Shown one piece after another: positions 25,148 through 59,983 of a DNA stretch of 64,000 nucleotides (its first letter is position 1; each line of letters starts with the position of its first letter). Below the pieces are notes generated by a model that had not been told where the DNA came from, made no database searches, and saw only the letters and a program-made list of their open reading frames with translations. Made by a program: the position numbers and the translations under genes. Where the stretch lies: the IMG/VR virus record IMGVR_UViG_3300046517_002304, positions 434,001 to 498,000 of that record. The stretch is one strand, 5' to 3'.

Positions 25148-28100
25148 TCAAGAACAGTCAGAAACCGCAAAAAATTGGGCCGTAACATCAGTCAAGGTAT
25201 TGCAATTTACGCTTTGCGTTTTGGTAAAATCACTAAGAAAAACAGGGTTGCTGTACATTTTTACGCTTGCGATGTTCGTTATTATACCAGCTTTTTTCAA
25301 CTTTGAACAGACCTCTTCCAAAGAACGCGCCGGAATTGTCATGACTTGACGAGACAAGCAGGATGCAGTGCTGTCACTAAGCGGAGGGCATGTTTGAGTA
25401 GAACAATTTGTTTCCACAGTATAAAACATCATTGACCCTTGCCCAATGCTCCATGACAAAACAAGCGTCGTAGAAAGATTGGCGTTCACATTCCAGCTTA
25501 TTGGAAGACTGATAACATACGTAACTTGTCCGCCGGTAGATCCGCCACCGAATATTAGGCCGCCGGTTCCAGTATATGAATGTGATAAAACAATACAATC
25601 GGCTTGTCCACCGAAGATAAGACCGCCAGTACCAAAATATATCCTTGTCTCAACATCAGCATCAGCGCTACCACTAAATATCAATCCGCCTGTTCCGATG
25701 TAAGAAAGTTGGAAGCTGGCATCACTACTACCACTAAATATCAATCCGCCAGATGTGTTGATCCACGTAAGAATATGGTTCACTATTCCTGTACCGCCCA
25801 GCATAAGACCGCCAGAGCCGTCTACAACAAAGTTAGGAATATAATACCCTGATGGGAAAGACGCATGATAATCAAATGCAATTTCATCGGGATCTGAATA
25901 ATCACTATAAACTATGACTTCATCAATTAAATTATTAAACCGATTTCCGCTGCCTGTTGACGGACCATCAATATACCTTGTGCCATTATTCTTAGCACCA
26001 ATACTAATCGCATCGTGCGACCCAACATTATCTGCAAGACCGCCATGAATGCCAAATAAAACGCCGTTCAAATACCCGGCGATAACATGTCCGGCAGCGT
26101 GGAACGATAATGCAGCATGATATCTTTGATGTGATTGTAAAATTGGGGAACTAAAGACATAGTGGAATCCCCAAGCCGGACTGCCGGAATCAGCCGTCAT
26201 GTTCCAAACAATCATGACAATTACATAAGAATCTAAATATATCCCAAACCCGCGAGTAATATCACCTTCTTCATAAAGAGTTCGGCGAGTAACAACATCG
26301 GCGCCGGTCCTAAACCAAAGTTCGATAGTTCTCTGAGTATATGGAGTACTGCTATTTATCGCGACATTATCCGGCGATAAAAGATAACTACTAGTTCCAC
26401 CAAACAGAACAGAAGCATTACTAGGATCAGACAAAATTAAACTTGTCTGATTTAAAGTAAAGTCACCATGGTAAGTCCCATTCATCGCAGAACCAAGCGA
26501 GCCTGAGTTTACCGCAGTTGTCCCAGATGGATCGTCCAACCTATACCACACTAACGGATTTCTTGACGTAATAGCATTAGCAAATGACGGAAACGTGTTA
26601 AAGAATATCCCGCCAGATGGATAAAAATTCATTACGGGATAAGAATGAGCGCTGCCCCCAAAATTTAAACCACCACTGCCAAAAAATGGCGTAATAACAA
26701 ATCCGTTTGCGCCTATAAATGAATTGGCTCTTATGGCACACGTAGCAATGTGATTTACCATCGGCATCGCACCAATACTGGCTACACAAAGTAATGGAGC
26801 TGCGGCAGGACCATAAACAAAACTAAAATTTATCGGTTTGCTAGTTCTATTTATTAAATTAGGATATGACGCCAAGCTATTTGTATAGCTGGCAAGTACC
26901 GTGTTCGCTGGTAAAGCACGATTATAAATCCTAACATCATCTAAGTACCCTGTAACAAATGATGTGATCTGGTTATAAGATCCGATAACCAAAGGTTGCC
27001 CGGAGTCAGATCCATGTGTACCAGTCCCGTCTGTCGCCCCGGAATAAGATACTTCCACACCATTATAATAAACATGAATATTAGATGCTGCGCTTCCCCC
27101 GCGCCATGTAACCACAACATGAGTCCAAGATCCAAACGGTGGAGGTGCACAACTTCTGGTGCAGTCTGTTCCATTAAATACAACAGCAACAAGTAGAGAC
27201 GGAATGTTTACTTGGATGTATAGACCAGCGCTAGCGTTATTGTCGGTCTTATAAATAACCGTACCACTAGAAACTCCCATTATCCAAAAACTAACAGTAA
27301 ATGGCCCAGTACCGATTAATTCATTGGGTGGACCAACTGCCCCCTGTGATGCTCCTCCGAAAAATAAAATGCTACCAAAGCCACCCTTGCGGGATGTGGG
27401 GCGATACCCCCCAAGAAAACGTTGTTGCAGATTTGCAAATAATGCATGATGCTTGCCGACTATATCATACCAATATAAGCCTTGGCTGGTTACCGGCGAT
27501 GCCAAATACCACGCAGTCAGCCCCTGCGCTAACGGATGTTTAAAGTTAACTTGTCTGGCAAAGTTAGTGTTGTTAATCGTAATAGGAAAAGTGCGACTGG
27601 CGTTTTGCGCAAACCCGGCTCTTTGTAGAGTATTGCCGCCTTCTACATGATCTACTCTTGCATTTAAAATAGCAGATGAACTATTGGCTACTCTGCATAT
27701 CTGGCCCTCAATTATTACACAATCGCCTCTGCATACAATATGAGTAGTTGCTATATGGGCCACTCTGGCGTTGGGCGTAGCGATATTAGAGACAACCGTT
27801 AAGTGAGCAGTGCCAACACGTTGACCGGGACTGAATGCTATAATTGTGGAATTACATATTACGGCACAGGCGCTCTTAATAGTATTCTTGGCCCGGGGAT
27901 TTAGGCTAACGCTATTTAATACTACACATGTTGCTACGTGAGCCACTTTAGATCCAGCAGTGCCAATACTTGACGAACAAATAATAGATGTATTGTTGTT
28001 AGATGCTACGTGTCCGCTAGCCCCAATGAATGAATTACAAACTATCGTCCAATTACCGGGGGCAACTATAGTATTAAAATTTATATATTTATTAGCCCTA

Positions 28101-30085
28101 TTGATAAGTCCAGGGTATGATGTAATGCTATTCTGGTAAAGTAAGTTGGTTTCGCCACGAGATAGTTCTCGGTTATAGATCCTAATGTCGTCCATATAAC
28201 CAGTTAAATTCTGAGTTGACTGGTTATACGAACCTATAACTAACGGAGATCCAGCATCAGTTAATCGCGTTCCGTTTCCATCAGATGTAGTTTGATATGC
28301 TTGTTCTACACCATTATAATAAATGTGAATGCCAGAAGCTAAACTAGACCCATTCCATGTTAAAGTTATATGTACCCAAGCATTAACTGGAGGTACTGGA
28401 GAAGACCTGATACAATCATTGTTTTGAAAAGTAATATTCAGCGCAAGTCCGCCGCTATTATAATCTATAAACCATCCCGATTGAACATCATTATCTGTTT
28501 TATACAAAAGAGTTGTGGCGGTTGATATTGAAATATACGTCCAAAAACTAACCGTGAACGCACCGGTACCAGTTAAAGCAGTTCTAGGGCCAAGTATATA
28601 AGATGTTCTGCTGCCCGTAAAATGAAAACTACCAAAACCACCTCTGTGACTAAGGACATTAAATCCATCGCCTTGGGCAGCAAACATATTTGTCAACACA
28701 CCATTATTACTGCGCGTAGTCAAATCATATACTATGGTAGATCGACTCTTCTGCGGTAGAGCCATATACCACAAAACTAATCCCTTAGACAAACAATTAC
28801 CGCTATTAACCGGATAGCTAAAATTAATATTATTAGAATCAGTCGGAAAACTCTTTCTATACTTTTGAACAAACCCAGCATTTTGCGTAACTATTCTAAG
28901 TCCAGAAAAATGAGACACCCTACAATTAGGTGTAGATATACTGGAATTACAAATAACAGCGACGGAATCAATGTGGGCTACTTTAGCGCTAGCCCCAATG
29001 TTACTATTACATTTTACTGCACAAGTCGCAACATGTGTAACTCTACAATTAGGCGTCGTAATGCTAGAGCTACACTTAACATCACAAATACCAAAAACAA
29101 AGTTTTGTAATGCAAAGTAAGGTATAAGAGAAGGCTGAGAATAAAGTTCGTCAGGGTACCGCCAAAGTTCAAAAACCTGTCCTGCCGTAAAAGGTTCGGC
29201 GTAAAGACGGAAGTCACGTATCGGTCCTACGAAGTCATGGCTTGCACTAGCTCCGCTAGTGGCAACCTGCCCACCGATGGTAATAGCCTGATTAGCACAA
29301 GATAATACTCCAGCAGCGTTTGCGCTGCTGGAGTTACTCGTAGCAATTAATTGTCCATTAATATAAAAAGACTGAGGTCGTGGTGATGGAAATCCTGTAA
29401 ACTTACTTACAACACAAGCATGTATCCATTCGCCAGGATTATCATCAATCCTAATAACAAAGTCATTACCGGCATAAATGTTATCGATCCAGTGTAATTC
29501 ACGAGTATGAGGATCGTACCAGAGGTACCATCCTTGAATTGTCGCTGGCCCACTATCATGAGGAACATGATTGCCAACAATAACATAGGTAAAACCAATA
29601 GAAGCTTGGTCCGGCGGTATCATAAACCAAATTGACATTGTCCAGCCGACTGATTCTGAATTTACAATTTGCGGAATAGAGCACTGGGTAGGTACAGTAA
29701 TATAATTACTGACGGCGGTCATATTAAACACCATACCGAAATATGTGTCATATATCCACTGACCAGTTAGATGACCTGTCAACGAGCCGTTAAAGTGGTT
29801 TGGTCCTACGTCCCTAACTGGCCAGCCGCCGGAAGTGCTGGTCCCGTTGGAATCTCCAGAACCATCGTTCAACGGCATGGCCAACACAAGTGTTGGCGTG
29901 AACTGTGAACTACCTTCGTTAATGCCAGGACACCAGCGTCCTCCCCACTCTACGTTTGTAATACAAGGACGAACATCGGGGACTGAGCCAGAGAACGACT
30001 GGATAGAAACTAGCTGACCGTCCGTACTGGCCGTGAAAGTAGGATTAATAGTAGAAAATGTGGGCAAAGTACGGACTAGGGCCAT
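25148..30085 (-). CDS. large LamG/concanavalin-A multi-domain virion protein (fibre/adhesin-like)
   Basis: 1645 aa with four LamG-like blocks (IRDFRLY, MDDIRIYNR, LDDVRIYNR, IDEVIVY) and C-terminal GGLxFxG repeats; TAAATA 4 nt before ATG. Confidence 0.8.
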   Translation of the reverse strand: MALVRTLPTFSTINPTFTASTDGQLVSIQSFSGSVPDVRPCITNVEWGGRWCPGINEGSSQFTPTLVLAMPLNDGSGDSNGTSTSGGWPVRDVGPNHFNGSLTGHLTGQWIYDTYFGMVFNMTAVSNYITVPTQCSIPQIVNSESVGWTMSIWFMIPPDQASIGFTYVIVGNHVPHDSGPATIQGWYLWYDPHTRELHWIDNIYAGNDFVIRIDDNPGEWIHACVVSKFTGFPSPRPQSFYINGQLIATSNSSSANAAGVLSCANQAITIGGQVATSGASASHDFVGPIRDFRLYAEPFTAGQVFELWRYPDELYSQPSLIPYFALQNFVFGICDVKCSSSITTPNCRVTHVATCAVKCNSNIGASAKVAHIDSVAVICNSSISTPNCRVSHFSGLRIVTQNAGFVQKYRKSFPTDSNNINFSYPVNSGNCLSKGLVLWYMALPQKSRSTIVYDLTTRSNNGVLTNMFAAQGDGFNVLSHRGGFGSFHFTGSRTSYILGPRTALTGTGAFTVSFWTYISISTATTLLYKTDNDVQSGWFIDYNSGGLALNITFQNNDCIRSSPVPPVNAWVHITLTWNGSSLASGIHIYYNGVEQAYQTTSDGNGTRLTDAGSPLVIGSYNQSTQNLTGYMDDIRIYNRELSRGETNLLYQNSITSYPGLINRANKYINFNTIVAPGNWTIVCNSFIGASGHVASNNNTSIICSSSIGTAGSKVAHVATCVVLNSVSLNPRAKNTIKSACAVICNSTIIAFSPGQRVGTAHLTVVSNIATPNARVAHIATTHIVCRGDCVIIEGQICRVANSSSAILNARVDHVEGGNTLQRAGFAQNASRTFPITINNTNFARQVNFKHPLAQGLTAWYLASPVTSQGLYWYDIVGKHHALFANLQQRFLGGYRPTSRKGGFGSILFFGGASQGAVGPPNELIGTGPFTVSFWIMGVSSGTVIYKTDNNASAGLYIQVNIPSLLVAVVFNGTDCTRSCAPPPFGSWTHVVVTWRGGSAASNIHVYYNGVEVSYSGATDGTGTHGSDSGQPLVIGSYNQITSFVTGYLDDVRIYNRALPANTVLASYTNSLASYPNLINRTSKPINFSFVYGPAAAPLLCVASIGAMPMVNHIATCAIRANSFIGANGFVITPFFGSGGLNFGGSAHSYPVMNFYPSGGIFFNTFPSFANAITSRNPLVWYRLDDPSGTTAVNSGSLGSAMNGTYHGDFTLNQTSLILSDPSNASVLFGGTSSYLLSPDNVAINSSTPYTQRTIELWFRTGADVVTRRTLYEEGDITRGFGIYLDSYVIVMIVWNMTADSGSPAWGFHYVFSSPILQSHQRYHAALSFHAAGHVIAGYLNGVLFGIHGGLADNVGSHDAISIGAKNNGTRYIDGPSTGSGNRFNNLIDEVIVYSDYSDPDEIAFDYHASFPSGYYIPNFVVDGSGGLMLGGTGIVNHILTWINTSGGLIFSGSSDASFQLSYIGTGGLIFSGSADADVETRIYFGTGGLIFGGQADCIVLSHSYTGTGGLIFGGGSTGGQVTYVISLPISWNVNANLSTTLVLSWSIGQGSMMFYTVETNCSTQTCPPLSDSTASCLSRQVMTIPARSLEEVCSKLKKAGIITNIASVKMYSNPVFLSDFTKTQSVNCNTLTDVTAQFFAVSDCS
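25668..25750. repeat. 23-bp direct repeat x2 (CTACCACTAAATATCAATCCGCC), 60-nt period
   Basis: Copies at 25668-25690 and 25728-25750 encode the GGLIFSGS peptide repeat. Confidence 0.85.
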
Positions 30086-30113
30086 ATATTATTTAGAGAA
30101 TCTCAACTATATT

Positions 30114-37241: not shown

Positions 37242-38864
37242 TTAAATAATTTTTTGCAACTTAGATGTCATACGCTCTAGTGTAGCAGAACGATCTTTTT
37301 TGTCAAGAACAACATTGATAATATACAAATCTTTACTCAATAAAGCTTCAGAGAAGGCAGAGTCTAATTCTGTTTCGGTGTTAACAAGCCGCCCGACACC
37401 ACGACCAATAATCTGAGGCAACAAGTGGTACTGCCAATTAGGAATATCGTTAAAACTACCGTCAATCAAAAATCGCTCTACCGTATAGCCGCCGTTATTC
37501 AGCACAACAATAATAGGATTTAGCTTATTGCTAGCTATCGTTGATATTTCCATTCCAGTCATCTGAAATGCTCCATCGCCAACCAATACAATCGGTCTAA
37601 CATCCGGTTTAGCAATCTGAACACCCAGGGCAGCAGGAATAGAGAATCCCATGGATGTATAAAATGCCTGTGATAAAAAGTTGTTACTGTGATGAACAAC
37701 TAGCTCATTAGAGCCGAATAAGCTGTCGCCTATGTCTGCAATTATTGCCATATTCTTGTCTAAAACAGCATTAATTTTTTCAAATAATCTCTTGACCGTA
37801 ATTTTCTCATTCTTAGGAGAAAAAACTGCTCTTGTCTTCATTTCGCCAACAATCGGAATTCGATCAGAAGAAATATTAGACTTAATTAACCCATTAACAA
37901 AATCTTGGAAAAGAACATTTTCATAGTAATGATTTCGCACTCCCATTTTTTCAGTAGTGCAAAATATCGTTCTATCTTTACGAAGAACAGATGGCTTAAA
38001 TCCAAAGTTAATGTCAGTAATCATCACGCCCAACATAATTAAGCAATCTGATTCCTCAACCTTTTGCTTAACTTCTGGGCTACTAGCATCCCCACAATAA
38101 ACACCTATAGATATCGGATGATTTTCATTTGTCAAACTCTTACTCAACATAGTTGTAGCAATGGGAATATTATACTTTCTAGCAAACTTGGTAATGACTT
38201 CGCCCATACCAAATCTAGCTAATTCAATGCCCGCCAAAATTACAGGGTTTTTACTTGAGTTGATCCAATTAATAGATTCCTGCAAAGCTTCCGCTAAATT
38301 TATCTTATCACTCTCTGTAGCTTTAGGAGAGCCGACCGTAAATGCATCATAGCTAATAGTTGTGTCCACCATATCTCTGGGGACTTCAATATAAACAGGT
38401 TGCTTATGCTGCTTCATGGCCAGAAGCACCCGATCAATTTCATAAGCCGCCATTACCGGATTATCTAATACACAAGAAGCGCAGGTCACATGTTTAAAAA
38501 TCTCAAACTGAGTATCATAAGAACCAACAGCATGATGCAGCGTCATTCCGCCGGCTCTCTCCTTTTTCCCGGGAGAACCGCTAATAACAACAACCGGAGA
38601 TTTTTCTGCGAAAGCGCCCCCGATAGAATTTAATAGTTTAAACCCACCGACGCAATAAGTGGTGCATACACAGCCAATACCGTTAACTCTGGCATATGCG
38701 TCAGCGGCGAACCCAGCGCACTGTTCGTCAGTAGTGCCGATTACAGGAAGAGATTTAGAAAACTGATTATACAAATTAAGAACGAAATCGCCAGGAACTC
38801 CAAAAATATGCTTTACACCACACTCTTTAAGACGAGAAATCAAAAATTGTGCAACTGTTGGCAT
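37242..38864 (-). CDS. TPP-dependent 2-keto-acid decarboxylase (indolepyruvate/phenylpyruvate/pyruvate decarboxylase family)
   Basis: FGVPGDF, DEQCAGFAADAYAR, LHH, GDGAFQMTGME...NNGGY TPP motif. Confidence 0.92.
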   Translation of the reverse strand: MPTVAQFLISRLKECGVKHIFGVPGDFVLNLYNQFSKSLPVIGTTDEQCAGFAADAYARVNGIGCVCTTYCVGGFKLLNSIGGAFAEKSPVVVISGSPGKKERAGGMTLHHAVGSYDTQFEIFKHVTCASCVLDNPVMAAYEIDRVLLAMKQHKQPVYIEVPRDMVDTTISYDAFTVGSPKATESDKINLAEALQESINWINSSKNPVILAGIELARFGMGEVITKFARKYNIPIATTMLSKSLTNENHPISIGVYCGDASSPEVKQKVEESDCLIMLGVMITDINFGFKPSVLRKDRTIFCTTEKMGVRNHYYENVLFQDFVNGLIKSNISSDRIPIVGEMKTRAVFSPKNEKITVKRLFEKINAVLDKNMAIIADIGDSLFGSNELVVHHSNNFLSQAFYTSMGFSIPAALGVQIAKPDVRPIVLVGDGAFQMTGMEISTIASNKLNPIIVVLNNGGYTVERFLIDGSFNDIPNWQYHLLPQIIGRGVGRLVNTETELDSAFSEALLSKDLYIINVVLDKKDRSATLERMTSKLQKII

Positions 38865-39699: not shown

Positions 39700-40245
39700 T
39701 CAAGAAAATAATTCTGGCACTTGCAACTCCATAATCCCTATCTTATCTTTAACCCAATGAAGGTTGCCGCCATATCTCTCTATTTTAACGCTATGATAAG
39801 ATTTGCTTAAAAACTCAAAAGTTTTTTTATAGTCTTTAGGCAGACCATAAGGCTTTTTAGGTGCATATACAATCCGCCGAATGCCACGATCAAGTATGTT
39901 TACCACCGAGTCAGGATGAGGAATAGTAGTAATATACAAACTAAACGCAAAAAAATTAGTTTCCTTATCAGAAAGCGCTCTTAAAACCTTGATTTCAGCA
40001 GGAACGATAAAATCATAAATTTTTGGATTGTCCCAAGACAATTTAAACGGATTGGCAGCATAAGTTGGGACATCACCTATCGGATAGGTGAAAGCCATAG
40101 CTCTTATTTCTTCCTTATCCGCTAAAACAGCTCCAGACTGGCAATAAGGATCTACCGATGCCCATGACGCAATTACAGCGTGCATCATCATCCGATGATC
40201 TAATGCGACAATATCCCTGGCATTCTTTTCCTGAAACTGAAACAT
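39700..40245 (-). CDS. dCMP-deaminase-fold protein lacking zinc ligands
   Basis: SVDPYCQSGAVL, VPAE (for HAE), LYITTIPHPDS (for PCxxC), GIRRIVY. Confidence 0.75.
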   Translation of the reverse strand: MFQFQEKNARDIVALDHRMMMHAVIASWASVDPYCQSGAVLADKEEIRAMAFTYPIGDVPTYAANPFKLSWDNPKIYDFIVPAEIKVLRALSDKETNFFAFSLYITTIPHPDSVVNILDRGIRRIVYAPKKPYGLPKDYKKTFEFLSKSYHSVKIERYGGNLHWVKDKIGIMELQVPELFS

Positions 40246-41411
40246 TATTCCGTCTTCAGCAGGTAAGACTTAGTTTCTTCCGTAAGCTCTTTAAGCCACT
40301 TAACATAGGGCGTTCCACCAGTACCGGTAGGATTATCACACTTTTTCTGGATATAGTCAACAGCATACCCAAAGTGAATTTCCCGAAATCGGCATAACTG
40401 AAGAATGATGTTATTATAAGTAGCTCTTACATACTTGTCAAGTTTATTATTAATAATTCCATCTCTGATATTAACCGATGATCCTTCAAGGTGCGAAACA
40501 AACCCACGGTGATTCCTGGGCATATACTTTCTCATATCATCAAGATGATGAGTCAAAATAGACTGCTGATGCTTAACTCCGAAAGCTGCCAATACAGCAG
40601 GAACAATAGAACTTTGAGCACCCGTTTCGCCTCTAAAAGACTGCTCTTTTGCACCACTAAAGAACGAACAGCTCGGAACATTTTCATACACTACATTTTC
40701 AAAACCAAAAATATAAGGTCTAACCTTACGGAAATAAACATCTGGGCTACACTTTTCTGGCATCCTTTCTAAAACCGTATTAATCCCTTTAAAAGAACTG
40801 CATATAACCTCTAGATTCTCGGCAAAGAAATCATCATTTGGCGCTTTACCGCTATCAAGAAACTCCGTTAAATTATAAATGCTTTTCAGCAATCTCCCTG
40901 CCCTAGCTTCAATTTCAACATGAACTAGAATAAACCAATCTTCATCATAAATATTATTAAATTTTTGAATTAACTGAATATTACCAAGCGATATATCAGA
41001 ATTCTTATCGATTCTCTTCCAGTTGTTCAATGCATAATCAGCATACGACAAAATCGGCGGTCTACCAACAATCTCTGACAAAGCACAAAGAGGACGAGCA
41101 ATCGCACTAGGGATATGCTTAACAACTCCAGCTTGGCCGTGCACATAAGCAGATGCAAAATAAGCATAAATCATCCTAAGTCGGTTTAAAACACCGCGCT
41201 CTTTATGCTCTTTAAGAGCCGAATAAGAGATATCGTATATCGGCAAGGTGTCTAGGGTAATTCTTACCTTACTGGACTGAACATGAGAAGGTAATTCATA
41301 GGCCACCTTATCCAAATAACTAAACCCAGAACCACTGGGCAATCGCTCAATCGGGTCTGGGCTAGCAAGAAATCCTCTGTCTTCATGAACGGTGGGATAA
41401 AATTCAGTCAT
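40245..41411 (-). CDS. indoleamine 2,3-dioxygenase family heme enzyme
   Basis: RPPILSYADY, DEDWFILVHVEIE, VRPYIFGF, FRGETGAQSS, proximal His in FREIH, GTGGTP. Confidence 0.92.
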   Translation of the reverse strand: MTEFYPTVHEDRGFLASPDPIERLPSGSGFSYLDKVAYELPSHVQSSKVRITLDTLPIYDISYSALKEHKERGVLNRLRMIYAYFASAYVHGQAGVVKHIPSAIARPLCALSEIVGRPPILSYADYALNNWKRIDKNSDISLGNIQLIQKFNNIYDEDWFILVHVEIEARAGRLLKSIYNLTEFLDSGKAPNDDFFAENLEVICSSFKGINTVLERMPEKCSPDVYFRKVRPYIFGFENVVYENVPSCSFFSGAKEQSFRGETGAQSSIVPAVLAAFGVKHQQSILTHHLDDMRKYMPRNHRGFVSHLEGSSVNIRDGIINNKLDKYVRATYNNIILQLCRFREIHFGYAVDYIQKKCDNPTGTGGTPYVKWLKELTEETKSYLLKTE

Positions 41412-51238: not shown

Positions 51239-53689
51239 ATGGAAGATTGTAAGCGACTAGTACTTCTGTGCCAAGAAGCACTAAAAACAAAAGGCATAGA
51301 CGACACAATACACAATAACCGCCTCAGGTGGGAACTCAAGGAATTACAGGTCAAAAATGACTGCGGATATTTCCTGAACATCCATGATAAAGGCGTTAAA
51401 AACCAACCTAACCATAAAAATGTATTAGTTCCCTATTTGCTTGATATCTGTAATGAATTTGATATTACCAAGCTTCCAGAATTCCTAATGGGAGAAATGC
51501 CAGATATTGACGTTGACTACCTCCCAGAAATACAACAATATCTCAAAAATGATTATGTTCCCAAAGCGTTCGGAGCAGAATACGTTTGCAATATAGGAAG
51601 CCACAATACGCTTGGCGTAAAATCTGCGCTTATCGACACAGTAAGAATTTATAGCAAAGATAGAGACGAAATTCTTAAGATTACAACTAAACTCCAAGAC
51701 AAGAATGACGAAGGCAAGCCTATTTCCTTTGAAGAAGCGATTAACTCTAATTCCGACTTAAAGAAGTATTTGGCCGAAAATCCAGAAATTAAAGAAGCAG
51801 CGGGAAAGCTGGTCGGTAAAACTAGAAGCTTTGGGCAACATGCGGCTGGTGTTATCATATCCAGCGTACCTTTAAAAACCCTAGTGCCACTTATTTCCGG
51901 CAAAGATGGGATGCAATGTAGCGCATGGGGCGAAGGACAGCATAGCCTAGATTTAAGTACAGTAGGATTAATTAAATTTGACTTTCTAGGAAGCGAATCC
52001 TTAAACAAAGTCATGCAATGCCTTAAGCTTATAAAAGAAAGACATGGTATTGAAAAAGTATGTGCGGCACCAGGTGGAGACAACTGGTCAGACATTTCTT
52101 ATCTTAACGATCCAAAATGCCTAGAAATGGCTAGTAAAGGCGATCTCAAAACTATTTTCCAGTTTGATTCCGACGTTGCGCGTAAAATGTGCAAAGATGG
52201 TGGCGTTGATAGATTTGAAGATTTGGTAGCCTATACGTCATTAAACCGCCCAGGATGCTTGGAAATGGGTACAGATGTGGAATTCATCAAGCGCAAAAAG
52301 GGCGCTTCATATGAGGTCCACCCGCTTCTAGAGCCTATCCTAAGAGATACTTACGCGCTAATGTTATATCAGGAGCAACTCTTCCGTATTCTTAACGTGG
52401 TGGGCAAAATTCCAGAACATCAATGCATGGAGGTTCAAAAAGCAGTATCTAAGAAAAAAGTAGATAAGTTCGCAAAATATAAAGAAATGTTCGTAGAAAA
52501 TGGCCAAAAAGTATTAAACCAATCAAAAGAAGAACTAGAAAAACTTTGGGCATTAATTGAAGCGTTCGCCAAGTACTCCTTCAACCTCGCGCACGCCTGT
52601 AGCTATACCTATGTTTCTTCCAGAATGTTATGGTTAAAATGCCACTACCCACTTGAATGGTATGCGGCCTGTATGTCGTCTTTAAAAACAGCCGATTCTA
52701 AGCTACAAGAGTATCGTTACGATGGTGTTAAGCATGATATAGTTTTTAACCGTCTTGACATTAACAAATCCAAGAGTAATTTTGCTATCGCAGAAGACAA
52801 CTCAATCTACTATGCTTTCTCTAAGATTAAGGGAATCGGTGATGATATTGCGGATAGAATTACATCATTGCAACCCTATGCTGATTTAAAGGATTTTCTA
52901 CATAAGTTCGGAGTTCTTTCTAATACACTAAAGCCGCTTATAGCACTAAGAATATTCGGCGATGACACAGTTTCTCTATGGAAGGAATATGAAAGATTTA
53001 AAGATGGCATTGACCAGAAAATAGAAGATTTAAACACTAAGCACGCTGAAACAATAAACAAGCACGCTTCGGAATTAATGTCTCTGCTTCCAGAACAATT
53101 GATGGATATCAATTCAATAAGTGAAATAGACAAATTAGAAAACATTATAGATGCTAAAATCTATAAGAAGTTATTAAAAATTAAAGAAAAAAACGGCAAA
53201 ACGATTGAGACATTTAATAAGAAACTAGCCAAACTTGAGAATTATGAAGTTAAAATTGAGCCTGAATACGAAAAGCTACTCCTAGACAAAGATGCAGCGG
53301 AAATCGCATTTTACGGATTTCCTTGGGACAGCCCATTATCCAAATACGTATCGGCAGAAGAACATCACTTTGACTGGATGGATGCTAACGGATTAGAAGT
53401 AGCGCCCATTAATGTAAGAATTACAAACATACAAGAAAAACAGGGAAAAGTTAAGTTTTATCAATTAACGGTTCAGGATATTTTAGGTGCGGAAAAGAAA
53501 GCAAACATATGGAACTCTGACTATAATATCTGGAAGGAATTGTTAGTAGTTGGTGCGCTAATAAGAATACAGTTAAAGGCTCCAAATGGCGGTTTTCCAA
53601 CTTATACGATGACATCGGAACGATTTAAAAAATATGTACGTGGAGTTAACGATTTTAGAATAGTGAATTTAGCAGGAGAAGTAAAATGA
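51239..53689 (+). CDS. dnaE: DNA polymerase III alpha subunit (C family) lacking the N-terminal PHP domain
   Basis: PDIDVDY, GQHAAGVII, KFDFLG, IFQF, LYQEQ, YSFNLAHA, C-terminal OB-like region; 816 aa. Confidence 0.93.
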   Translation: MEDCKRLVLLCQEALKTKGIDDTIHNNRLRWELKELQVKNDCGYFLNIHDKGVKNQPNHKNVLVPYLLDICNEFDITKLPEFLMGEMPDIDVDYLPEIQQYLKNDYVPKAFGAEYVCNIGSHNTLGVKSALIDTVRIYSKDRDEILKITTKLQDKNDEGKPISFEEAINSNSDLKKYLAENPEIKEAAGKLVGKTRSFGQHAAGVIISSVPLKTLVPLISGKDGMQCSAWGEGQHSLDLSTVGLIKFDFLGSESLNKVMQCLKLIKERHGIEKVCAAPGGDNWSDISYLNDPKCLEMASKGDLKTIFQFDSDVARKMCKDGGVDRFEDLVAYTSLNRPGCLEMGTDVEFIKRKKGASYEVHPLLEPILRDTYALMLYQEQLFRILNVVGKIPEHQCMEVQKAVSKKKVDKFAKYKEMFVENGQKVLNQSKEELEKLWALIEAFAKYSFNLAHACSYTYVSSRMLWLKCHYPLEWYAACMSSLKTADSKLQEYRYDGVKHDIVFNRLDINKSKSNFAIAEDNSIYYAFSKIKGIGDDIADRITSLQPYADLKDFLHKFGVLSNTLKPLIALRIFGDDTVSLWKEYERFKDGIDQKIEDLNTKHAETINKHASELMSLLPEQLMDINSISEIDKLENIIDAKIYKKLLKIKEKNGKTIETFNKKLAKLENYEVKIEPEYEKLLLDKDAAEIAFYGFPWDSPLSKYVSAEEHHFDWMDANGLEVAPINVRITNIQEKQGKVKFYQLTVQDILGAEKKANIWNSDYNIWKELLVVGALIRIQLKAPNGGFPTYTMTSERFKKYVRGVNDFRIVNLAGEVK

Positions 53690-54051: not shown

Positions 54052-54732
54052 ATGACGTGCAGAAAATACGTACGCGGATCATACCCCACTAAAGGGAAGT
54101 GTTCGCCTTGTGGCGTTTCATTGTGTAATTCTAAATTGCTACAATGCTGCGGTAAAATCTGTCCGCCTCCAGCGTGCCCGCAAATAGAAAATCAATATGG
54201 CATCGGCTGCTGCGCAATCATTGTAGATGGCGCAAGAACTATGAATTACTCTATAGAATCATCGTGTCCATGCCTAGATGGACTTACCGGCACATTTCAA
54301 GCTCTGGGGAATGGGGGTGAGGTAACATCTTGGGGAGAGGATGGCCATCACCTCGCTAGCCCTCAGTGCGACTGTCGGGAAGGCGGATGCCTAGGACTTC
54401 CAGATACATTCAATAAATCTACATTCAGCATGACGATCAGGTGCGACAGTGGTGGATTTTCGCTACTGGCGCAAACTTTCGGCGGGAACAACCGAATGTG
54501 CGAAGGCGGCTCCTGGGTATGCCAAATGTCTGCAAATGCATCATGGGTGTGCTGCGATACATCCATGCCGTTACCACTAGAGCCAATAGGCATTGACGGA
54601 CAAGCATGCGATAGTTTTTCTTACACCTTTGAGGGATTTATGATGAAGCCTGATTCTTTTTTTAATAGAAATACATGTGGCTGTCCATGTGCTCAAGGAT
54701 CTTCTATATCCGTTACAGTTACAAATATATAA
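54052..54732 (+). CDS. very Cys-rich late protein
   Basis: More than 20 Cys including CC pairs; TAAATA-N4-ATG. Confidence 0.75.
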   Translation: MTCRKYVRGSYPTKGKCSPCGVSLCNSKLLQCCGKICPPPACPQIENQYGIGCCAIIVDGARTMNYSIESSCPCLDGLTGTFQALGNGGEVTSWGEDGHHLASPQCDCREGGCLGLPDTFNKSTFSMTIRCDSGGFSLLAQTFGGNNRMCEGGSWVCQMSANASWVCCDTSMPLPLEPIGIDGQACDSFSYTFEGFMMKPDSFFNRNTCGCPCAQGSSISVTVTNI

Positions 54733-54735
54733 AAT

Positions 54736-55260
54736 ATGACAAGATGTAACACGCCAGGCAATCAAAAGTCCTGTTATGTAATAATAGGATTTACAAGTAA
54801 CATCAAACTAGAGGCCGGAAGCCCAAATACATTTGACCTCCATTGCGTAAATCAATTCTACTCAATCGGCGATCAAACAATAACTGAAAATGATATCATA
54901 AAAAAATATTACTGTAGTGATGGTAGTGACGGACATCTACCCTGCAATGTATCATCGGAATGGGCGAATTGTAGCGTACAAGGTGTAACAGTATATCTCA
55001 ATATCGGAGGACCATACTTAACGCCGCCGGTTGATGTGCATGATGGAGACAATATAACAGTGATAGTCACCTTTCCCGGAGATGCACCAATAAACCCCCC
55101 CCTGTCCTTAGGAAGATTTCCTGACGGCATTGAGTGCGTACAGTCTATGCCTATGTTCGTCTTTAGCTACTATAAGCCTAGCCAAAACAAGATAGTTATA
55201 AACAGACAGGCATTAATTAGACAAATTAAAGCCGACCAAAAACGTAGAAATATCCGATAG
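54736..55260 (+). CDS. hypothetical late protein
   Basis: TATATA-N4-ATG; 174 aa. Confidence 0.7.
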   Translation: MTRCNTPGNQKSCYVIIGFTSNIKLEAGSPNTFDLHCVNQFYSIGDQTITENDIIKKYYCSDGSDGHLPCNVSSEWANCSVQGVTVYLNIGGPYLTPPVDVHDGDNITVIVTFPGDAPINPPLSLGRFPDGIECVQSMPMFVFSYYKPSQNKIVINRQALIRQIKADQKRRNIR

Positions 55261-55323
55261 TCTTAAAATATACCTTTTCCACAATATATAATACGTACAG
55301 TAATTTAATAGGATAATCTAAAA

Positions 55324-56196
55324 ATGAGTCTAAAATCATTCGAAGAGTTTGTAAAAAATAAAGGTGGAGTTCCTTACGTGTTTTCGGAAAAGATTCCACC
55401 AAAGTCAATTTCTGCTGATTCAGAAGGCGATGAAGAAGGCATGGGATTGCTTGGAAGTCCTCAGATGATGGACAAAGAACAACCCCCACTAACGCGGGTT
55501 GAGAAAAAGGACATGGCCGATCCAGAGTATACGAAGAATGGCGAAAAACTAAAGACTCAAAAAGAAGGCGTTGAACTAGTTGAGCATCGTGGCGAAAGCG
55601 ATGATTTATCAATGTCAAGTATTGATGGCGGAAAATTTTCGCCATCAATTAGCGAAGTTGCTTCATATACGGCTAAGTTAATTAAGAAGCACCCTCATAC
55701 AGCAGAGCACTTTGTTAGAAACCTAAAGAAGCACGGCAGTTTTGAGGGATTTATCGCTGAGGCCGTTGAGCACCCAGAAACATTCGCGTGTCTAGCAAAT
55801 CACATCGGGCATGACGAACATGGTCCCCGCCATTCAAAAAAGATGGTCAAGGCCCTAATGGCGCATCACACTGCAAAACATGCTATTAAAGAAAGCGTTG
55901 ATGGTCCTCGTGGTGGCGATTTCGGTGGCGGAATGCCTTCGGCTCCTCCAGCACCAATGGGAGTTGCGCCAATGCCAGTTAATTCAGATCCTACCGGGCT
56001 TTCACCAACGACCGGAATGAGTGGGATGGGTGGAAGCGGGAACCTGAGTACAAGCCAAGCGCCGCCGGCCGTTCAGATGCCTGCTCCATCCGAGTCAGCA
56101 CACAAGGGCGAAGGGTACCACAACCTGGTATCAGAAATGAGCAAGGAGCCGGAAATGCACGATGCGATGCGTGAATGTTGCGGCATGGGATACTAA
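55324..56196 (+). CDS. probable internal head protein
   Basis: Starts MSLKSFEEFV (capsid-targeting-like); I-K-E|S site; low-complexity G/P/M tail. Confidence 0.5.
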   Translation: MSLKSFEEFVKNKGGVPYVFSEKIPPKSISADSEGDEEGMGLLGSPQMMDKEQPPLTRVEKKDMADPEYTKNGEKLKTQKEGVELVEHRGESDDLSMSSIDGGKFSPSISEVASYTAKLIKKHPHTAEHFVRNLKKHGSFEGFIAEAVEHPETFACLANHIGHDEHGPRHSKKMVKALMAHHTAKHAIKESVDGPRGGDFGGGMPSAPPAPMGVAPMPVNSDPTGLSPTTGMSGMGGSGNLSTSQAPPAVQMPAPSESAHKGEGYHNLVSEMSKEPEMHDAMRECCGMGY

Positions 56197-56210
56197 CTTA
56201 GTCATAAGTT

Positions 56211-56239
56211 AAAAAAAGCCGCTTTAAGCGGCTTTTTTT
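56211..56239. terminator. bidirectional intrinsic terminator
   Basis: AAAAAAAGCCGCTT-T-AAGCGGCTTTTTTT between convergent genes. Confidence 0.92.
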
Positions 56240-56245
56240 ATTCGA

Positions 56246-56788
56246 TCAATCCCCATTACCCTTTTTGTAAATTTTCTTGATCTGGGATAAATCTTCCTTA
56301 GACGGCTTGCTACCACGATACTTCTGATATAATGGCTGCGCCTTGCACTTATGCTTCCAAAACTTCTCAGTAGCAATCTGTATTTCACATATCATGCCAC
56401 CAATTACAATATCTACATGCACAGTTCCATAATAGCCAAACTCATACTCATTAGGACTATCATTATGGGCGACCTTCTTAACAATGAAATGCTTCTTGAT
56501 ATTATCAACAATTTTAGATATTTGATTTTTGGTATCTACAAGAATCGCGGCCCTTAATATGTCAAATACCTTAGATGGAGACTTATTCCTTTTCTTGGTT
56601 TTATTATTAAACGACTTCTCGCTTTTAATATCTATGACAATCTTATGTCCATCAGCAGAATGCTTGAGTAGCGTAGCAAATTTTGGCTTCAATTCTAAAG
56701 CCATTTTCTTTGCTTTATCATAAGTTTGAAAATCCTGCTTTTTAGCAATCGGCTGAGGATTTTTCTCTATCCATTCTTTAAAGTCCAT
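56246..56788 (-). CDS. RelA/SpoT-fold nucleotidyltransferase (small alarmone synthetase-like)
   Basis: IKSEKSFNNK, DILRAAI, GYYGTVH, CEIQIAT; TAAATA-N4-ATG; starts MDFKEWIE. Confidence 0.75.
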   Translation of the reverse strand: MDFKEWIEKNPQPIAKKQDFQTYDKAKKMALELKPKFATLLKHSADGHKIVIDIKSEKSFNNKTKKRNKSPSKVFDILRAAILVDTKNQISKIVDNIKKHFIVKKVAHNDSPNEYEFGYYGTVHVDIVIGGMICEIQIATEKFWKHKCKAQPLYQKYRGSKPSKEDLSQIKKIYKKGNGD

Positions 56789-56802
56789 ACATTATTTATG
56801 AA

Positions 56803-56997
56803 CTAGGATTTCTTCTTTTTCTTTTTACGATGTTCGGCCCTATCACCAGCACTACCAATCGGCCAACCTTCCATTGAAACTCCGGCAACACCTGCCGAGC
56901 CAGCAATATTAAAACCGAGTTTCTGCAACCTGCTTTTTGGCACGGTCCCTACAATAATTGCCCCGCCTTCTTTTAGCCATTCTTGAAACGTTTTCAT
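56803..56997 (-). CDS. small internal-protein-like peptide with T4 CTS-like N-terminus
   Basis: MKTFQEWLKE; basic tail RKKKKKKS; TATATA-N4-ATG. Confidence 0.65.
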   Translation of the reverse strand: MKTFQEWLKEGGAIIVGTVPKSRLQKLGFNIAGSAGVAGVSMEGWPIGSAGDRAEHRKKKKKKS

Positions 56998-57008
56998 ATA
57001 TTATATAA

Positions 57009-57039
57009 CAAAAGCGGCCTAGGAAATTCCTAGGCCGCT
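57009..57039 (-). terminator. intrinsic terminator
   Basis: AGCGGCCTAGGAA-T-TTCCTAGGCCGCT followed by TTTGTT. Confidence 0.85.
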
Positions 57040-57100
57040 CACTATCCAAAAAGGAGACTTGGCTCCTGACAGAAATTATATACCAACTACGCTTTAATAA

Positions 57101-57595
57101 TTAAAAGCCGCCAACTATTTCATGCACTTCATCAACACTAATTCCTAACACTTTAGAAGCATTTTTAATCTTCTTATGAAGAAGGGTATAATTAGCCTTC
57201 ATTCGCTTTACGTGCTCTTTCAACTGAGGGTGATCGGTATTATATAAAGCGTCCTCTCCCGCGTCCCAAACATCAGCATATGCATCGGCAACATCAATTT
57301 CACCAGAGCTAAAATAAGCACAAGCCAAAGATACATTATACACAATCGGGTGTTGAACTGTGACCTGTATATCGGTACTAGCCGTAACCGAAATAAGAGA
57401 CTTTATTTCTCGTATAAGAGGATGTCCCGCTAGTTTGTTTTGTTCATCATACTGAATATGGTAAATTTTCTGATTAATCTTGCTCTGCAACGCCTGCAAA
57501 GCTTTTAAATCATTAACGCTATCTATATCAACGCCTTTTTTAGCGCCCTTGATTTTAGTTTTAATAGCTTTAACTTTAGTTTTCATATTTTTCAT
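57101..57595 (-). CDS. hypothetical protein, paralog family A
   Basis: Aligns with 58126..58587 (IDSVND/VEKIND; HPQLKE/HPVIKQ; LGISVDEVHEIV/FGISEGDVWDIV). Confidence 0.8.
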   Translation of the reverse strand: MKNMKTKVKAIKTKIKGAKKGVDIDSVNDLKALQALQSKINQKIYHIQYDEQNKLAGHPLIREIKSLISVTASTDIQVTVQHPIVYNVSLACAYFSSGEIDVADAYADVWDAGEDALYNTDHPQLKEHVKRMKANYTLLHKKIKNASKVLGISVDEVHEIVGGF

Positions 57596-58147
57596 TTAAT
57601 CGCCTATTAATTGTTCAAGATCATGCATTCTAAGATTTGATACAAAGCCACATCTATCATTATAATGGTATCTTGTATTCACGCAACCAGATGCAAACCG
57701 ATTAATAAACTTACGCTTTTTACCAAACGGCCAAACTCTATATTTTAACAAATAACTTAATACCGACCATCGCATAGAACTACCGCGCCAAAACTCGCCA
57801 GGCTCAATGCAAAAGGTGTGCTGGTTGGTAGTACAGTAAATCACAGCAGGGTTTTTTAACTTTAACTTGGCTTCAATATCGGACACGACCTTAATGCGTC
57901 CTGGATTATTTGTCGTAATAAAAAATGCTTTAAACTTTCCACTTCGGAAGTAATGTAAGTAACCCTGAAAAGAATCCCGACATGACATAGGATTCCATCC
58001 ATTGGCCGAATAAACACTAGGAAGATAAAAACTAAAAGATGAGTCTACCGGAAACGGAACTCCTTCTGGAAGTTCCGGCAAACTTTCTATGTAATTACGA
58101 GAAAACATGGCATCTCTCATTGTCCTCATAAATTGACTATGTCCCAA
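57596..58147 (-). CDS. hypothetical protein, paralog family B
   Basis: CRDSF, FWRGSSMRWS, RFASGCVNT. Confidence 0.8.
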   Translation of the reverse strand: MGHSQFMRTMRDAMFSRNYIESLPELPEGVPFPVDSSFSFYLPSVYSANGWNPMSCRDSFQGYLHYFRSGKFKAFFITTNNPGRIKVVSDIEAKLKLKNPAVIYCTTNQHTFCIEPGEFWRGSSMRWSVLSYLLKYRVWPFGKKRKFINRFASGCVNTRYHYNDRCGFVSNLRMHDLEQLIGD

Positions 58148-58587
58148 ACATCGCCCTCTGATATGCCGAATTCTTTCGCAGTCTTTAATACTTTTTCTCT
58201 AATCTGTTTTTGAATTATTCTAATATCCTTAATCCTTTGTTTTATTACAGGATGATTGCCACCCTGTATTTTATTCTCTTCTACAGCAGGATAATAATCC
58301 CCTTTAAGTTCCACGTAGTCTACTGCAATTTCGCTGCCTTGATCGTATGAATCTACGATTAGAGAAACTCTAAATTCCAGTGCTTTTTTAGAGGGCACAG
58401 TAACATCAAACTCACACCTTCCATTAATCTGCTGTGCCAATAAACGAATTTCTTTTACCAATGAAAAGCTTGAAAGCTTATTCTTCTTAGCACGATCCTG
58501 ACTATCAATCTTAGATATTTTATTATCAATACTTTCTCTAAGCTTAGTCAAAACCTTACGATCATTAATTTTTTCAACATCAATCAT
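58126..58587 (-). CDS. hypothetical protein, paralog family A
   Basis: See 57101..57595. Confidence 0.8.
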   Translation of the reverse strand: MIDVEKINDRKVLTKLRESIDNKISKIDSQDRAKKNKLSSFSLVKEIRLLAQQINGRCEFDVTVPSKKALEFRVSLIVDSYDQGSEIAVDYVELKGDYYPAVEENKIQGGNHPVIKQRIKDIRIIQKQIREKVLKTAKEFGISEGDVWDIVNL

Positions 58588-59204
58588 ATCGCATCTCCCA
58601 TAATTTTCTTGAGTTCTTTACGATTCACAAAGCATTTATCAACTTGCTTCGGAGTTAAATTATAAAAATGATCACACCAGCCAGTAAATTTAGGCGCATC
58701 ATAATAACTATAACCATTATTATGCCTAAAAGTCTGATAGCGTACATAATGATTGCCGTTTAAAAACTTATTAACGGCAACCCTCGTATTGCGCGATGAA
58801 AAATACTCTGACCTACGTATCGTAGAAACAACGTTGGCCCTATAGCTTCTACCGGCTCTTATTAAAGCTGTCAGTAAAGAAAACCTAACTCTCTTCATCC
58901 AAAAACCGGTCAGCTTAATACAAACAATATTCTTTCCGTCAGTTCTATATCCATTACACCGAAATCTTTTGGGTACCTTAGACTTAATCTGAAAATCTTT
59001 CAAAAATTTTATAATATTTCCTAAGTGAGCGCCACTCTTACACTGATAAAACAATCTTCTCGGATACGGATTATAGCGAAACGTATCATCCACAGATTCA
59101 CGACAATACTCCCAATACTGGTAATTGTCGTTTACTAAATAAAATGAATCTTTATATTCTCCATAAATATCATCGTTAGATGGAGCTTTAATCAATCTTT
59201 TCAT
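58584..59204 (-). CDS. hypothetical protein, paralog family B
   Basis: CRES, FWMKRVRFSLLTALIRAG, KFLNG, TGWCDHF. Confidence 0.8.
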   Translation of the reverse strand: MKRLIKAPSNDDIYGEYKDSFYLVNDNYQYWEYCRESVDDTFRYNPYPRRLFYQCKSGAHLGNIIKFLKDFQIKSKVPKRFRCNGYRTDGKNIVCIKLTGFWMKRVRFSLLTALIRAGRSYRANVVSTIRRSEYFSSRNTRVAVNKFLNGNHYVRYQTFRHNNGYSYYDAPKFTGWCDHFYNLTPKQVDKCFVNRKELKKIMGDAI

Positions 59205-59208
59205 TAAG

Positions 59209-59748
59209 TCACCTACAGATTAACTTGGAAACATCAGGAAGTAATTTTAAATTTTCAAAAATACCAAAATCAGGATTGTAATGAATCGCCGTGTTCACAC
59301 AGCCTGATTTAAACTTTGCTAAAAATTCTTTTTTCAAATCAGTATCAAAGTATGGGCCAACATACCCCCGAGCCTTAAATACAGAACTAAAAACAGAAAG
59401 CCTCATCGGACTAGCAAGCCAAAATTTGCTCATTTCAATATAAGTGATACGTTTCTCATCAGTAGGAAAAAAATTAGTGCGATCTAAAGTATCAATATTT
59501 AATTCTTGTTCAATATCTTGAACCGGCTGAATATGCATTTTAGATGCACCCTCTGGTGCTCTCAAATAAAGAATGTGTCTTTTATCTTCGCTAATTTTCA
59601 AAATTCTGCTCTGAAATACGTCCCTGCAAAGATACCACGCTTTATCTGTAAAGCTGAGAAAGTCAGCTATTAAAAATGGATACGACGAGAAATCATAATT
59701 AGCATGTGTTGGGGGTATCTTTACACTAGATTTAAATGGCCAAAACAT
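59209..59748 (-). CDS. hypothetical protein, paralog family B
   Basis: CRDVF, FWLASPMRLS, KFKSGCVNT; start moved to ATG 59748. Confidence 0.8.
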   Translation of the reverse strand: MFWPFKSSVKIPPTHANYDFSSYPFLIADFLSFTDKAWYLCRDVFQSRILKISEDKRHILYLRAPEGASKMHIQPVQDIEQELNIDTLDRTNFFPTDEKRITYIEMSKFWLASPMRLSVFSSVFKARGYVGPYFDTDLKKEFLAKFKSGCVNTAIHYNPDFGIFENLKLLPDVSKLICR

Positions 59749-59749
59749 A

Positions 59750-59983
59750 TTAGACCTCTTTATAACCTTTTGCCGTTTTCTCTTTAACCATCTTAGACAC
59801 ATGCTTAATGGCATCGTCGTTACTTGAGAATTCCTTAATACTAAAACTGCCAGCAGCGCCTATCTTGCCATACTTAAAAAATACTACGTCTTCTTCACAA
59901 AAAACGCTCCAGAACTTATTAGACCGCCCCTTCGTAAATTCAAACCTACGAAAGACTTCTTTAACGCCATCTAGTTTTTTCAT
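59750..59983 (-). CDS. stand-alone WGR-domain protein
   Basis: SNKFWSV...YGKIG...KEF...KEKTAKGY; start ATG 59983. Confidence 0.85.
   Translation of the reverse strand: MKKLDGVKEVFRRFEFTKGRSNKFWSVFCEEDVVFFKYGKIGAAGSFSIKEFSSNDDAIKHVSKMVKEKTAKGYKEV

Follow-up and report, generated by a model that had tools for sequence, protein, structure and literature searches.

The locus described here spans positions 55324-56997 of the window, a 64,000-nt stretch of DNA (G000:434001-498000) taken from a whole virus record of 511,233 bp, which we denote G000. It holds three adjacent genes, the middle one of which encodes a 180-amino-acid (aa) protein of the RelA/SpoT fold, preceded by a short N-terminal segment that resembles the capsid-targeting sequence of phage T4. 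The record carries direct terminal repeats and around 930 genes, has a GC content of 39% and uses the standard code; the phage is uncultivated, and an identical sequence was found in soil and rhizosphere metagenomes. A nucleotide search of the phage collection gave no near-identical match to the locus. An earlier note on this DNA had proposed that the 180-aa protein is made late, packed into the head and delivered at infection as an alarmone-making or tRNA-modifying effector, and this interpretation is supported in those parts that can be tested in silico.

The three genes begin, as the earlier note had read them, with MSLKSFEEFV, MDFKEWIEKN and MKTFQEWLKE, and the boxes that it placed 4 nt before the ATG of the second and third are present in the sequence. 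Unmentioned there was the strand of the first gene, which encodes a 290-aa protein and lies opposite to the other two, convergent with them. In window coordinates, the features of the locus are:

55324-56196, plus strand: open reading frame (ORF) for the 290-aa protein, which starts MSLKSFEEFV and has aromatic residues at positions 6 and 9
56210-56240, both strands: bidirectional hairpin terminator between the convergent genes (-17.8 kcal/mol on each strand, z -4.7 and -5.5)
56246-56788, minus strand: gene for the 180-aa small-alarmone-synthetase-like pyrophosphokinase, pI 9.7 (from ORF, Pfam, PHROG and AF2 model)
56249-56728, minus strand: catalytic domain, residues 21-180 (from structure matches and profile alignments to YwaC, Rel and Tas1)
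56762-56788, minus strand: codons 1-9, MDFKEWIEK, a capsid-targeting-like N-terminal helix outside the catalytic domain (helix predicted at residues 3-9)
56793-56799, minus strand: ATAAATA box, separated by 4 nt from the start codon (ATG) of the enzyme gene
56803-56997, minus strand: ORF for a 64-aa basic protein, pI 10.4, which starts MKTFQEWLKE and ends in a C-terminal lysine run
57002-57008, minus strand: TTATATA box, likewise 4 nt away from the ATG with which the 64-aa gene starts
57012-57040, minus strand: 13-bp hairpin terminator closing the upstream gene (from a terminator scan; fold -26.1 kcal/mol, z -6.8)

The two hairpins flank both minus-strand genes, which thus constitute a separate two-gene unit; the stop codon of the 64-aa gene is separated from the enzyme gene by 14 nt, within which the ATAAATA box of the latter sits. 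None of the three genes has an NCBIfam or PADLOC family.

The enzyme and its acceptor

The RelA/SpoT fold that the earlier note had read from the letters is borne out by a family match and by a structural model. The 180-aa protein matches Pfam PF04607 (RelA_SpoT) at 31.6 bits (cut-off 27; 32 bits in a scan of its own genome, which holds no second match) and phrog_37685 at 5e-24. Its AF2 model, made with an alignment of 44 homologues, has a predicted local distance difference test score of 93.9, and the top matches returned by Foldseek and VIA-align are solely small alarmone synthetases or their toxin relatives: RelQ (Z 15.4, rmsd 2.4 Å over 156 residues), RelP (Z 14.5), Tas1 (Z 13.4) and CapRel (Z 12.7). 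These matches always cover residues 21-180, which makes the first 20 residues an appendage. A single-sequence search of solved structures gave nothing, whereas the family profile did find matches, and the profile alignments to YwaC (5e-5) and Tas1 (1e-3) are both weak. A word-indexed protein search likewise recovered one relative only, so that an exhaustive profile search was needed to assemble the family; it found 250 representative relatives at E up to 1e-3.

Across the family, K55, K63, D76, R79, G118, Y119, G121, E135 and Q137 are invariant. Three of these are unchanged in all 44 aligned sequences: the Mg-binding D76, the catalytic E135 and the acceptor-stacking G-loop Y119, substitution of which inactivates toxic small alarmone synthetases (toxSASs) (PMC7229694). 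The synthetase motifs around them are atypical, in the way that the earlier note had described, and none of the canonical forms RxKxxxSxxxK (Syn1), DxxGxR (Syn2) and EIQIRT (Syn4) is present. Syn1 reads D53-I-K55-x3-S59-x3-K63, retaining K55, S59 and K63 but having lost the first Arg. Syn2 reads D76-I-L-R79-A-A, for which the family form is D-[IV]-L-R-G/A-A in place of D-x-x-G-x-R. Syn3 is G118-Y119-Y-G-T-V-H124, and Syn4, E135-I-Q137-I-A-T, is without the Arg of its canonical counterpart. The deviations in Syn1, Syn2 and Syn4 are common to the whole family. Both of the two Arg residues that we take to sandwich the ATP adenine in RelQ structures are replaced in the 180-aa enzyme.

With three canonical substrate-binding Arg gone (from RxK, DxxGxR and EIQIRT), the protein might be a catalytically dead RelA/SpoT fold that serves inside the head as a basic protein with a structural or DNA-binding role; its pI of 9.7 would suit such a role, as T4 internal proteins are reported to be basic too (PMC9026906). 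Against this stand the metal-binding Asp, catalytic Glu, G-loop Tyr and Syn1 Lys and Ser, which are invariant across 44 diverged homologues, the new invariant Arg79 in Syn2, and the example of Tas1, a very active enzyme that deviates in Syn1 and Syn2 in the same way. Since the catalytic residues are invariant, we consider a dead enzyme very unlikely. The 180-aa protein is, by its motifs and model, an active-looking, divergent small alarmone synthetase-type pyrophosphokinase.

Which acceptor it would use is suggested by the same deviations. In the profile alignment, the (p)ppApp synthetase Tas1, a type VI effector, has P-I-K-S at Syn1 and D-L-A-R-N-T at Syn2, and the phage MuF-Apk2 (p)ppApp synthetases have R-Y-T at the corresponding Syn2 site (PMC12226406). 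The 180-aa enzyme shares with the (p)ppApp synthetases the Arg at D+3 in Syn2 together with the loss of the Syn1 Arg, and lacks their Syn3 G-x-N and Syn4 Y-H signatures. Because Syn1 and Syn2 are closer to Tas1 and Apk2 than to RelQ, we favour an adenosine acceptor: ADP or ATP, giving (p)ppApp, and the A76 end of tRNA together make up a fairly probable set of substrates. GDP or GTP, giving (p)ppGpp, appears unlikely as the acceptor. Pulling the other way is Syn3, whose [ST]-x-H, a guanosine-type form, is that of (p)ppGpp synthetases and not the G-x-N of Apk2; tRNA-modifying toxSASs, for their part, have no sequence signature, so that the acceptor is not readable from sequence. RNA-end enzymes are encoded near several homologues, namely a CCA-adding enzyme and Pth2 in Sinorhizobium phage phiM12, Rnl1 on the contig of homologue P0122, and an RNA phosphodiesterase/ligase in Paraglaciecola Antarctic GD virus 1, which keeps a tRNA or RNA 3'-end target in play.

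The enzyme can be compared with three groups of known synthetases. With Tas1 and Apk2 it shares the fold (as measured against Tas1), the loss of the first Syn1 Arg and the Arg at D+3. It differs in having no MuF or PAAR carrier domain and, relative to Apk2, in Syn3 and in a family Syn4 of I-A/V-M rather than Y-H. MuF polymorphic toxins start with an N-terminal MuF (SPP1 gp7-like) domain, whereas just 20 residues precede the catalytic domain here. MuF proteins are thought to be in the phage head (PMC12226406), which makes MuF-Apk2 a precedent for the joining of a head protein to a synthetase of this kind. The tRNA-pyrophosphorylating toxSASs (FaRel2, PhRel, PhRel2 and CapRel) are alike in fold, G-loop Tyr, Mg-binding Asp and basic character; phage-encoded members exist, and RNA-end enzymes occur near homologues of the 180-aa enzyme. 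Unlike them, the enzyme has neither a conserved adjacent antitoxin nor a fused sensor domain, and toxSAS membership has no diagnostic signature. RelQ and RelP provide the best structural matches (Z 14-15) and, through YwaC, the best profile match, but identity is about 15% and the enzyme matches no NCBIfam family.

An immunity gene was looked for beside the enzyme, and neither IapK, Aph1 nor a small alarmone hydrolase (SAH) is found there, the 64-aa and 290-aa neighbours matching no family; the SpoT-type hydrolase described below lies about 107 kb away, in contrast to the adjacent IapK or Aph1 genes of Tas1 and Apk2. These neighbours bear on whether the enzyme and the 64-aa protein are toxin and antitoxin of a phage-borne module, or a pair for superinfection exclusion, in the manner of Phrann gp29/gp30 (PhRel). 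The two-gene unit bounded by terminators on both sides would fit such a pair, and toxins encoded next to their antitoxin make up several subfamilies of small alarmone synthetases (PMC7229694). In five other loci that we examined, however, no 64-aa homologue stands beside the enzyme homologue, nor does a homologue of the other locus neighbour, and the neighbours differ at every locus; moreover, each gene has its own box, PADLOC gives no match, and the 64-aa protein itself bears a full T4-like targeting motif. The lack of a 64-aa homologue beside the family members of these loci makes a toxin-antitoxin pair very unlikely.

An N-terminal tag shared by many proteins of the phage

In T4 internal protein III (IPIII), whose start MKTYQEFIAE was taken from the T4 record, targeting to the head depends on residues 4 and 7 and processing on residues 8 and 10; with Asp at position 10, processing is blocked and targeting is unaffected (PMC9026906). 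We denote the corresponding segment in the 511-kb phage the tag. The 64-aa protein has the closest version at the locus: its MKTFQEWLKE is identical to the T4 sequence at 6 of 10 positions, with three more conservative, and has both the F4/W7 targeting pair and the L8-K-E10 processing site. With both parts of the T4-like motif, for targeting and for processing, it is a candidate for a small internal protein of the head. The enzyme has the capsid-targeting-like N-terminus that the earlier note had ascribed to it, with the aromatic pair (F3/W6) and the following aliphatic residue (I7), but not the I/L-x-E processing site (I7-E8-K9), so that the enzyme, if packaged, may stay uncut. The 290-aa protein has a His-rich helical middle, a Gly/Pro/Met-rich tail and no box at -4, and matches no Pfam, PHROG, NCBIfam or PADLOC family; we regard it as a weaker candidate cargo protein.

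The tag recurs across the genome. A strict pattern (aromatic-x-[EDQ]-aromatic-aliphatic starting from residues 2-6) occurs at 19 gene starts, compared with 2.8 expected from the rest of the proteome, and a loose pattern occurs at 7.4% of N-termini compared with 2.4% of positions after internal Met residues. A curated list comprises 48 candidates, around 40 of them convincing by eye, with the consensus M-[KRNQ]-x(0-1)-F-x-[EQK]-[FW]-[LI]-x-E; 21 of the 48 have [LIVM]-x-E within residues 9-13, and 20 have an upstream box. The tagged genes are concentrated between 41 and 86 kb, next to the head module (142-165 kb), between 222 and 250 kb and at the enzyme locus (489-491 kb). In the tag codons, the information lies in positions 1 and 2, and synonymous choice is free (TTT or TTC; five Leu and three Ile codons), indicating selection on the peptide and not on DNA or mRNA. 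A DNA-level explanation of the motif is ruled out by this codon analysis. No Pfam family matches any of the ten largest tagged proteins, to which PHROG adds only four weak matches; rapidly evolving cargo could appear family-less in this way, but by itself the lack of families shows nothing.

The genome also encodes the machinery that a T4-type signal would need. We found an S77 (gp21-type) prohead protease (1.4e-25; phrog_207) and a gp23-type major capsid protein (4.8e-87; phrog_138), and, adjoining the protease in the position of T4 gene 22, a 303-aa Glu/Lys-rich helical scaffold-like protein with no family match. The protease, scaffold-like and capsid genes are in T4 order, and all three components expected of a phage with T4-type cargo, a gp21-type protease, a scaffold core and a gp23-type capsid, are thus encoded. 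In the capsid protein, an L-N-E site precedes the conserved IPLVRR segment by 22 residues; it lies roughly where we take T4 gp23 to be cut, after L-T-E. With these T4-type head morphogenesis genes, a T4-type capsid-targeting sequence has matching machinery in the phage. Beside the head module lie tandem paralogues (G000:153771-155204 and 155201-156607; 477 and 468 aa) that start MRF(R/S)..(L/I)ESFGSFNYRVP and match phrog_20946, of unknown function; they are candidates for major tagged cargo or core proteins.

The tag is not confined to this genome. Among 150 representatives of the enzyme family, at least 66 have the motif (aromatic-xx-aromatic-aliphatic) at their start, many in a form that differs little from the T4 sequence; L-x-E is present in 40 of these, as in MKTFKEFITE, MKSFKEFITE and MLSFSEFIQE. 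Between the tag and the catalytic domain there are typically 40-70 residues. By these counts the tag is a property of the enzyme family across phages and not of the 511-kb phage only. In culture, the family is represented in the Sinorhizobium phiM12 group (gp230 of phiM12), Desulfovibrio phage 7757/SRB7757, Variovorax V45v66 and Paraglaciecola GD virus 1 (gp92). The S77 protease is present in all four of these lineages (one record each), and three of the four cultured-phage enzymes start with a related motif (MSLLKEFREY, MIEFKQYVLME and MIGFSEYLEE). Homologue P0017 adjoins T4 gp2, tail-tube and T4 baseplate genes. An ATAAATA box precedes the ATG by 4 nt in P0003, 6 nt in P0017 and about 30 nt in both phiM12 and P0042.

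Two side observations concern the family. Long-form homologues (P0014-P0151) have a second, acidic-aromatic motif after the tag, such as I-L-F-D-x-x-F or I-F-E-N-x-x-W, which may be a propeptide or an inhibitory segment and is missing from the short form of the 511-kb phage. In Paraglaciecola Antarctic GD virus 1 (record 54516-56055), gp92 and gp94 are both annotated as RelA/SpoT family, with one small gene between them, and adjoin RNA-repair-type genes.

Upstream boxes and linked genes

The spacing of the box is a genome-wide regularity. NTAAATA ends exactly 4 nt before the start codon 31 times, compared with 0-7 times at each other spacing, which excludes chance as its origin, and around 57 genes carry TAAATA, TATATA or TATAAT at 3-5 nt. 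Among the box-bearing genes are ORFs of 2580, 1028 and 738 aa, the last two from a set of paralogues with near-identical N-termini, and a 1645-aa Laminin_G_3 protein. Tag and box are associated (odds ratio 9.3, p 7.6e-11). Boxes within the window occur, for example, at 30086-30100, 54733-54735, 56793-56799 and 57002-57008; other genes use AAGGAG ribosome-binding sites. The T4 late promoter is TATAAATA, a few bases before the transcript start. The likeness of the box to this promoter, together with the fixed 4-nt spacing, suggests that this class of around 57 genes is expressed late and translated from leaderless mRNAs.

A second class of genes is distinct in position and box. Between G000:263000 and 408000, 57 small minus-strand genes share the box TAGTTATCC(A/G)TAA, which in 30 of them ends 10 nt before the ATG; the block at 263-408 kb is probably an early region with its own promoter class. 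Inside it lies an HD_4 (SpoT-type) hydrolase (G000:382613-383188). MazG, which we also looked for in the genome, is absent. The only 4 tRNA genes in the 511 kb (two tRNA-Met, Arg-TCT and Leu-TAA) are likewise all in the putative early block; with just 4, an own tRNA set as a means of escape from tRNA modification is ruled out.

A phosphatase is also linked to the enzyme. The closest relatives of the enzyme (44-54% identity) are fusions of an NIF/HAD phosphatase to it (P0002, P0003 and P0006-P0009); these begin with the tag, on the phosphatase part, and retain an internal relic, N-E-W-V-E-K-N-P-Q-P, where the two parts join. The 511-kb phage has a separate NIF gene (G000:3635-4108), which itself starts MFKTWLE. 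The SpoT-type hydrolase and this motif-bearing NIF/HAD phosphatase are likely means of reversing or processing the enzyme product. Were the synthetase to arrive with the DNA and the hydrolase to be expressed early, the two would act as a transient on-off pair. SAHs that phages encode as stand-alone proteins neutralise every toxSAS against which they were tested (PMC7229694), and the phage hydrolase could equally be aimed at host toxSAS defences.

A proposed model of delivery with the phage DNA

Taken together, the tag, the head genes and the analogy with T4 lead us to favour, with modest confidence, a model in which the enzyme is made late, loaded into the head by its tag, ejected with the DNA and active on the host. 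Its gene would be transcribed late from the ATAAATA box 4 nt before the ATG, probably as a leaderless mRNA. The 9-residue, amphipathic N-terminal helix would then bring the enzyme into a T4-type prohead scaffold core, by analogy with T4 IPIII and Alt, alongside around 40 other tagged proteins. The enzyme would remain in the filled head and be ejected together with the DNA, and in the new host it would move pyrophosphate from ATP onto a 3'-OH.

The precedents in T4 are IPII, IPIII and Alt, to which the predicted cargo is alike in having a short N-terminal signal with aromatics three apart followed by L/I-x-E, and in the pathway of T4-type protease, scaffold and gp23. Like the T4 internal proteins (PMC9026906), the cargo is basic, and like the ADP-ribosyltransferase Alt it would be an enzyme acting on the host right after injection. 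The 511-kb phage departs from T4 in that this cargo is a RelA/SpoT-type pyrophosphokinase, which T4 does not have, in that the enzyme's own tag is without a processing site, and in the number of tagged genes, around 40 compared with a handful in T4, packaging here being predicted.

Several observations count against delivery in the head. No [LIVM]-x-E occurs within residues 1-30 of the enzyme, and its tag is one residue shorter than that of T4 (F3/W6 compared with 4/7). T4 gp61.1, a 54-aa hypothetical protein encoded beside the primase gene (T4 record 18966-19130) and not among the head genes, starts MKTFKEFI, so such a start is by sequence alone no proof of head targeting. The segment EW[IV]EK is kept internally in the fusion proteins and may therefore have a role within the domain itself. 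As for timing, the major capsid gene has no box at -4, and a T4 gp55 query against the genome found no homologue of this late sigma factor; the 'late' label accordingly rests on the likeness to TATAAATA and on the box before large structural-type genes.

The gp61.1 start and the internal EW[IV]EK also count for a rival reading, that the enzyme is purely intracellular, a late protein that is not packaged and might slow host metabolism or time lysis, its tag serving chaperone or protease binding, a degron, or leaderless-mRNA translation. The co-occurrence of the tag with the -4 box makes a link to leaderless translation conceivable, and the homologue on the P0122 contig lies among nucleotide-metabolism genes typical of early regions. 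The tag is nevertheless conserved at the amino-acid level with third codon positions free, many box genes have no tag and many tagged genes no box, and the pattern fits the mapped T4 targeting residues, including the L/I-x-E site for a protease that the phage encodes. We therefore regard an unpackaged, intracellular enzyme, although the chief rival, as unlikely, and continue to favour delivery with the DNA.

Extending this model beyond the 511-kb phage is more tentative. It is possible that T4-superfamily phages, from isolates of about 140 kb to the 511-kb phage, commonly package and inject a dedicated family of RelA/SpoT-type pyrophosphokinases through the T4 signal, as takeover effectors that make alarmones or modify RNA ends, with the NIF/HAD phosphatase and the SpoT-type hydrolase as antidote or second step, and with around 40 cargo proteins in the 511-kb phage. 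Capsid-targeted cargo (T4 internal proteins and Alt), toxic or secreted alarmone synthetases (Tas1, FaRel and CapRel) and a MuF-fused (p)ppApp synthetase are already known. A full-text literature search found no paper linking a capsid-targeting sequence with an alarmone synthetase. What appears new is the combination of tag and enzyme and its wide spread in T4-superfamily phages, together with the NIF fusions and the large tagged set of the 511-kb phage; all of these are variants and not a new category.

Injected phage proteins act ahead of phage gene expression, and beyond T4, P1, N4 and the phiKZ group only few examples are known to us. Should the tag function as in T4, injected cargo would be predictable from sequence in uncultivated T4-related phages, and the recurrent NIF/HAD fusion and the co-occurring SpoT-type hydrolase would point to an undescribed two-enzyme chemistry. 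If delivery is borne out, the phage would have a large, mostly unannotated injected proteome of around 40 proteins, roughly 4% of its genes, and alarmone-type or tRNA-end pyrophosphorylation, which we know so far from bacterial stress signalling, toxins and anti-phage defence, would also be among the means by which phages attack. The cultured relatives Sinorhizobium phiM12, Paraglaciecola GD virus 1 and Desulfovibrio phage 7757 allow direct testing.

The surroundings of the locus hold further elements. Immediately upstream of the two-gene unit, at window 57101-59814 on the minus strand, lies a series of alternating paralogous genes with no family match, in which a 164-aa product resembles a 153-aa one, and products of 183, 206 and 201 aa are alike, with a common ...GCVNT..HYN... 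segment. On the other side, 54052-54732 and 54736-55260 (both plus strand) encode adjacent cysteine-rich proteins of 226 and 174 aa, also with no family match, each preceded by a late-type box. The 816-aa ORF at 51239-53689 (plus strand) resembles, by eye and with no family library run, the C-terminal part of a DnaE-type polymerase, an unusual gene, if so, for a phage whose head genes are of T4 type. An indoleamine 2,3-dioxygenase homologue (40245-41411, minus strand; Pfam IDO 9e-71) lies near a three-domain thiamine-pyrophosphate enzyme (37242-38864, minus strand); the two are possible auxiliary genes of tryptophan or indole metabolism in a rhizosphere phage. Finally, an Amidoligase_2 protein (24030-25073, minus strand) adjoins the 1645-aa protein (25148-30085, minus strand), whose gene bears a late-type box and which, with four Laminin_G_3 domains, is probably a fibre or adhesin.

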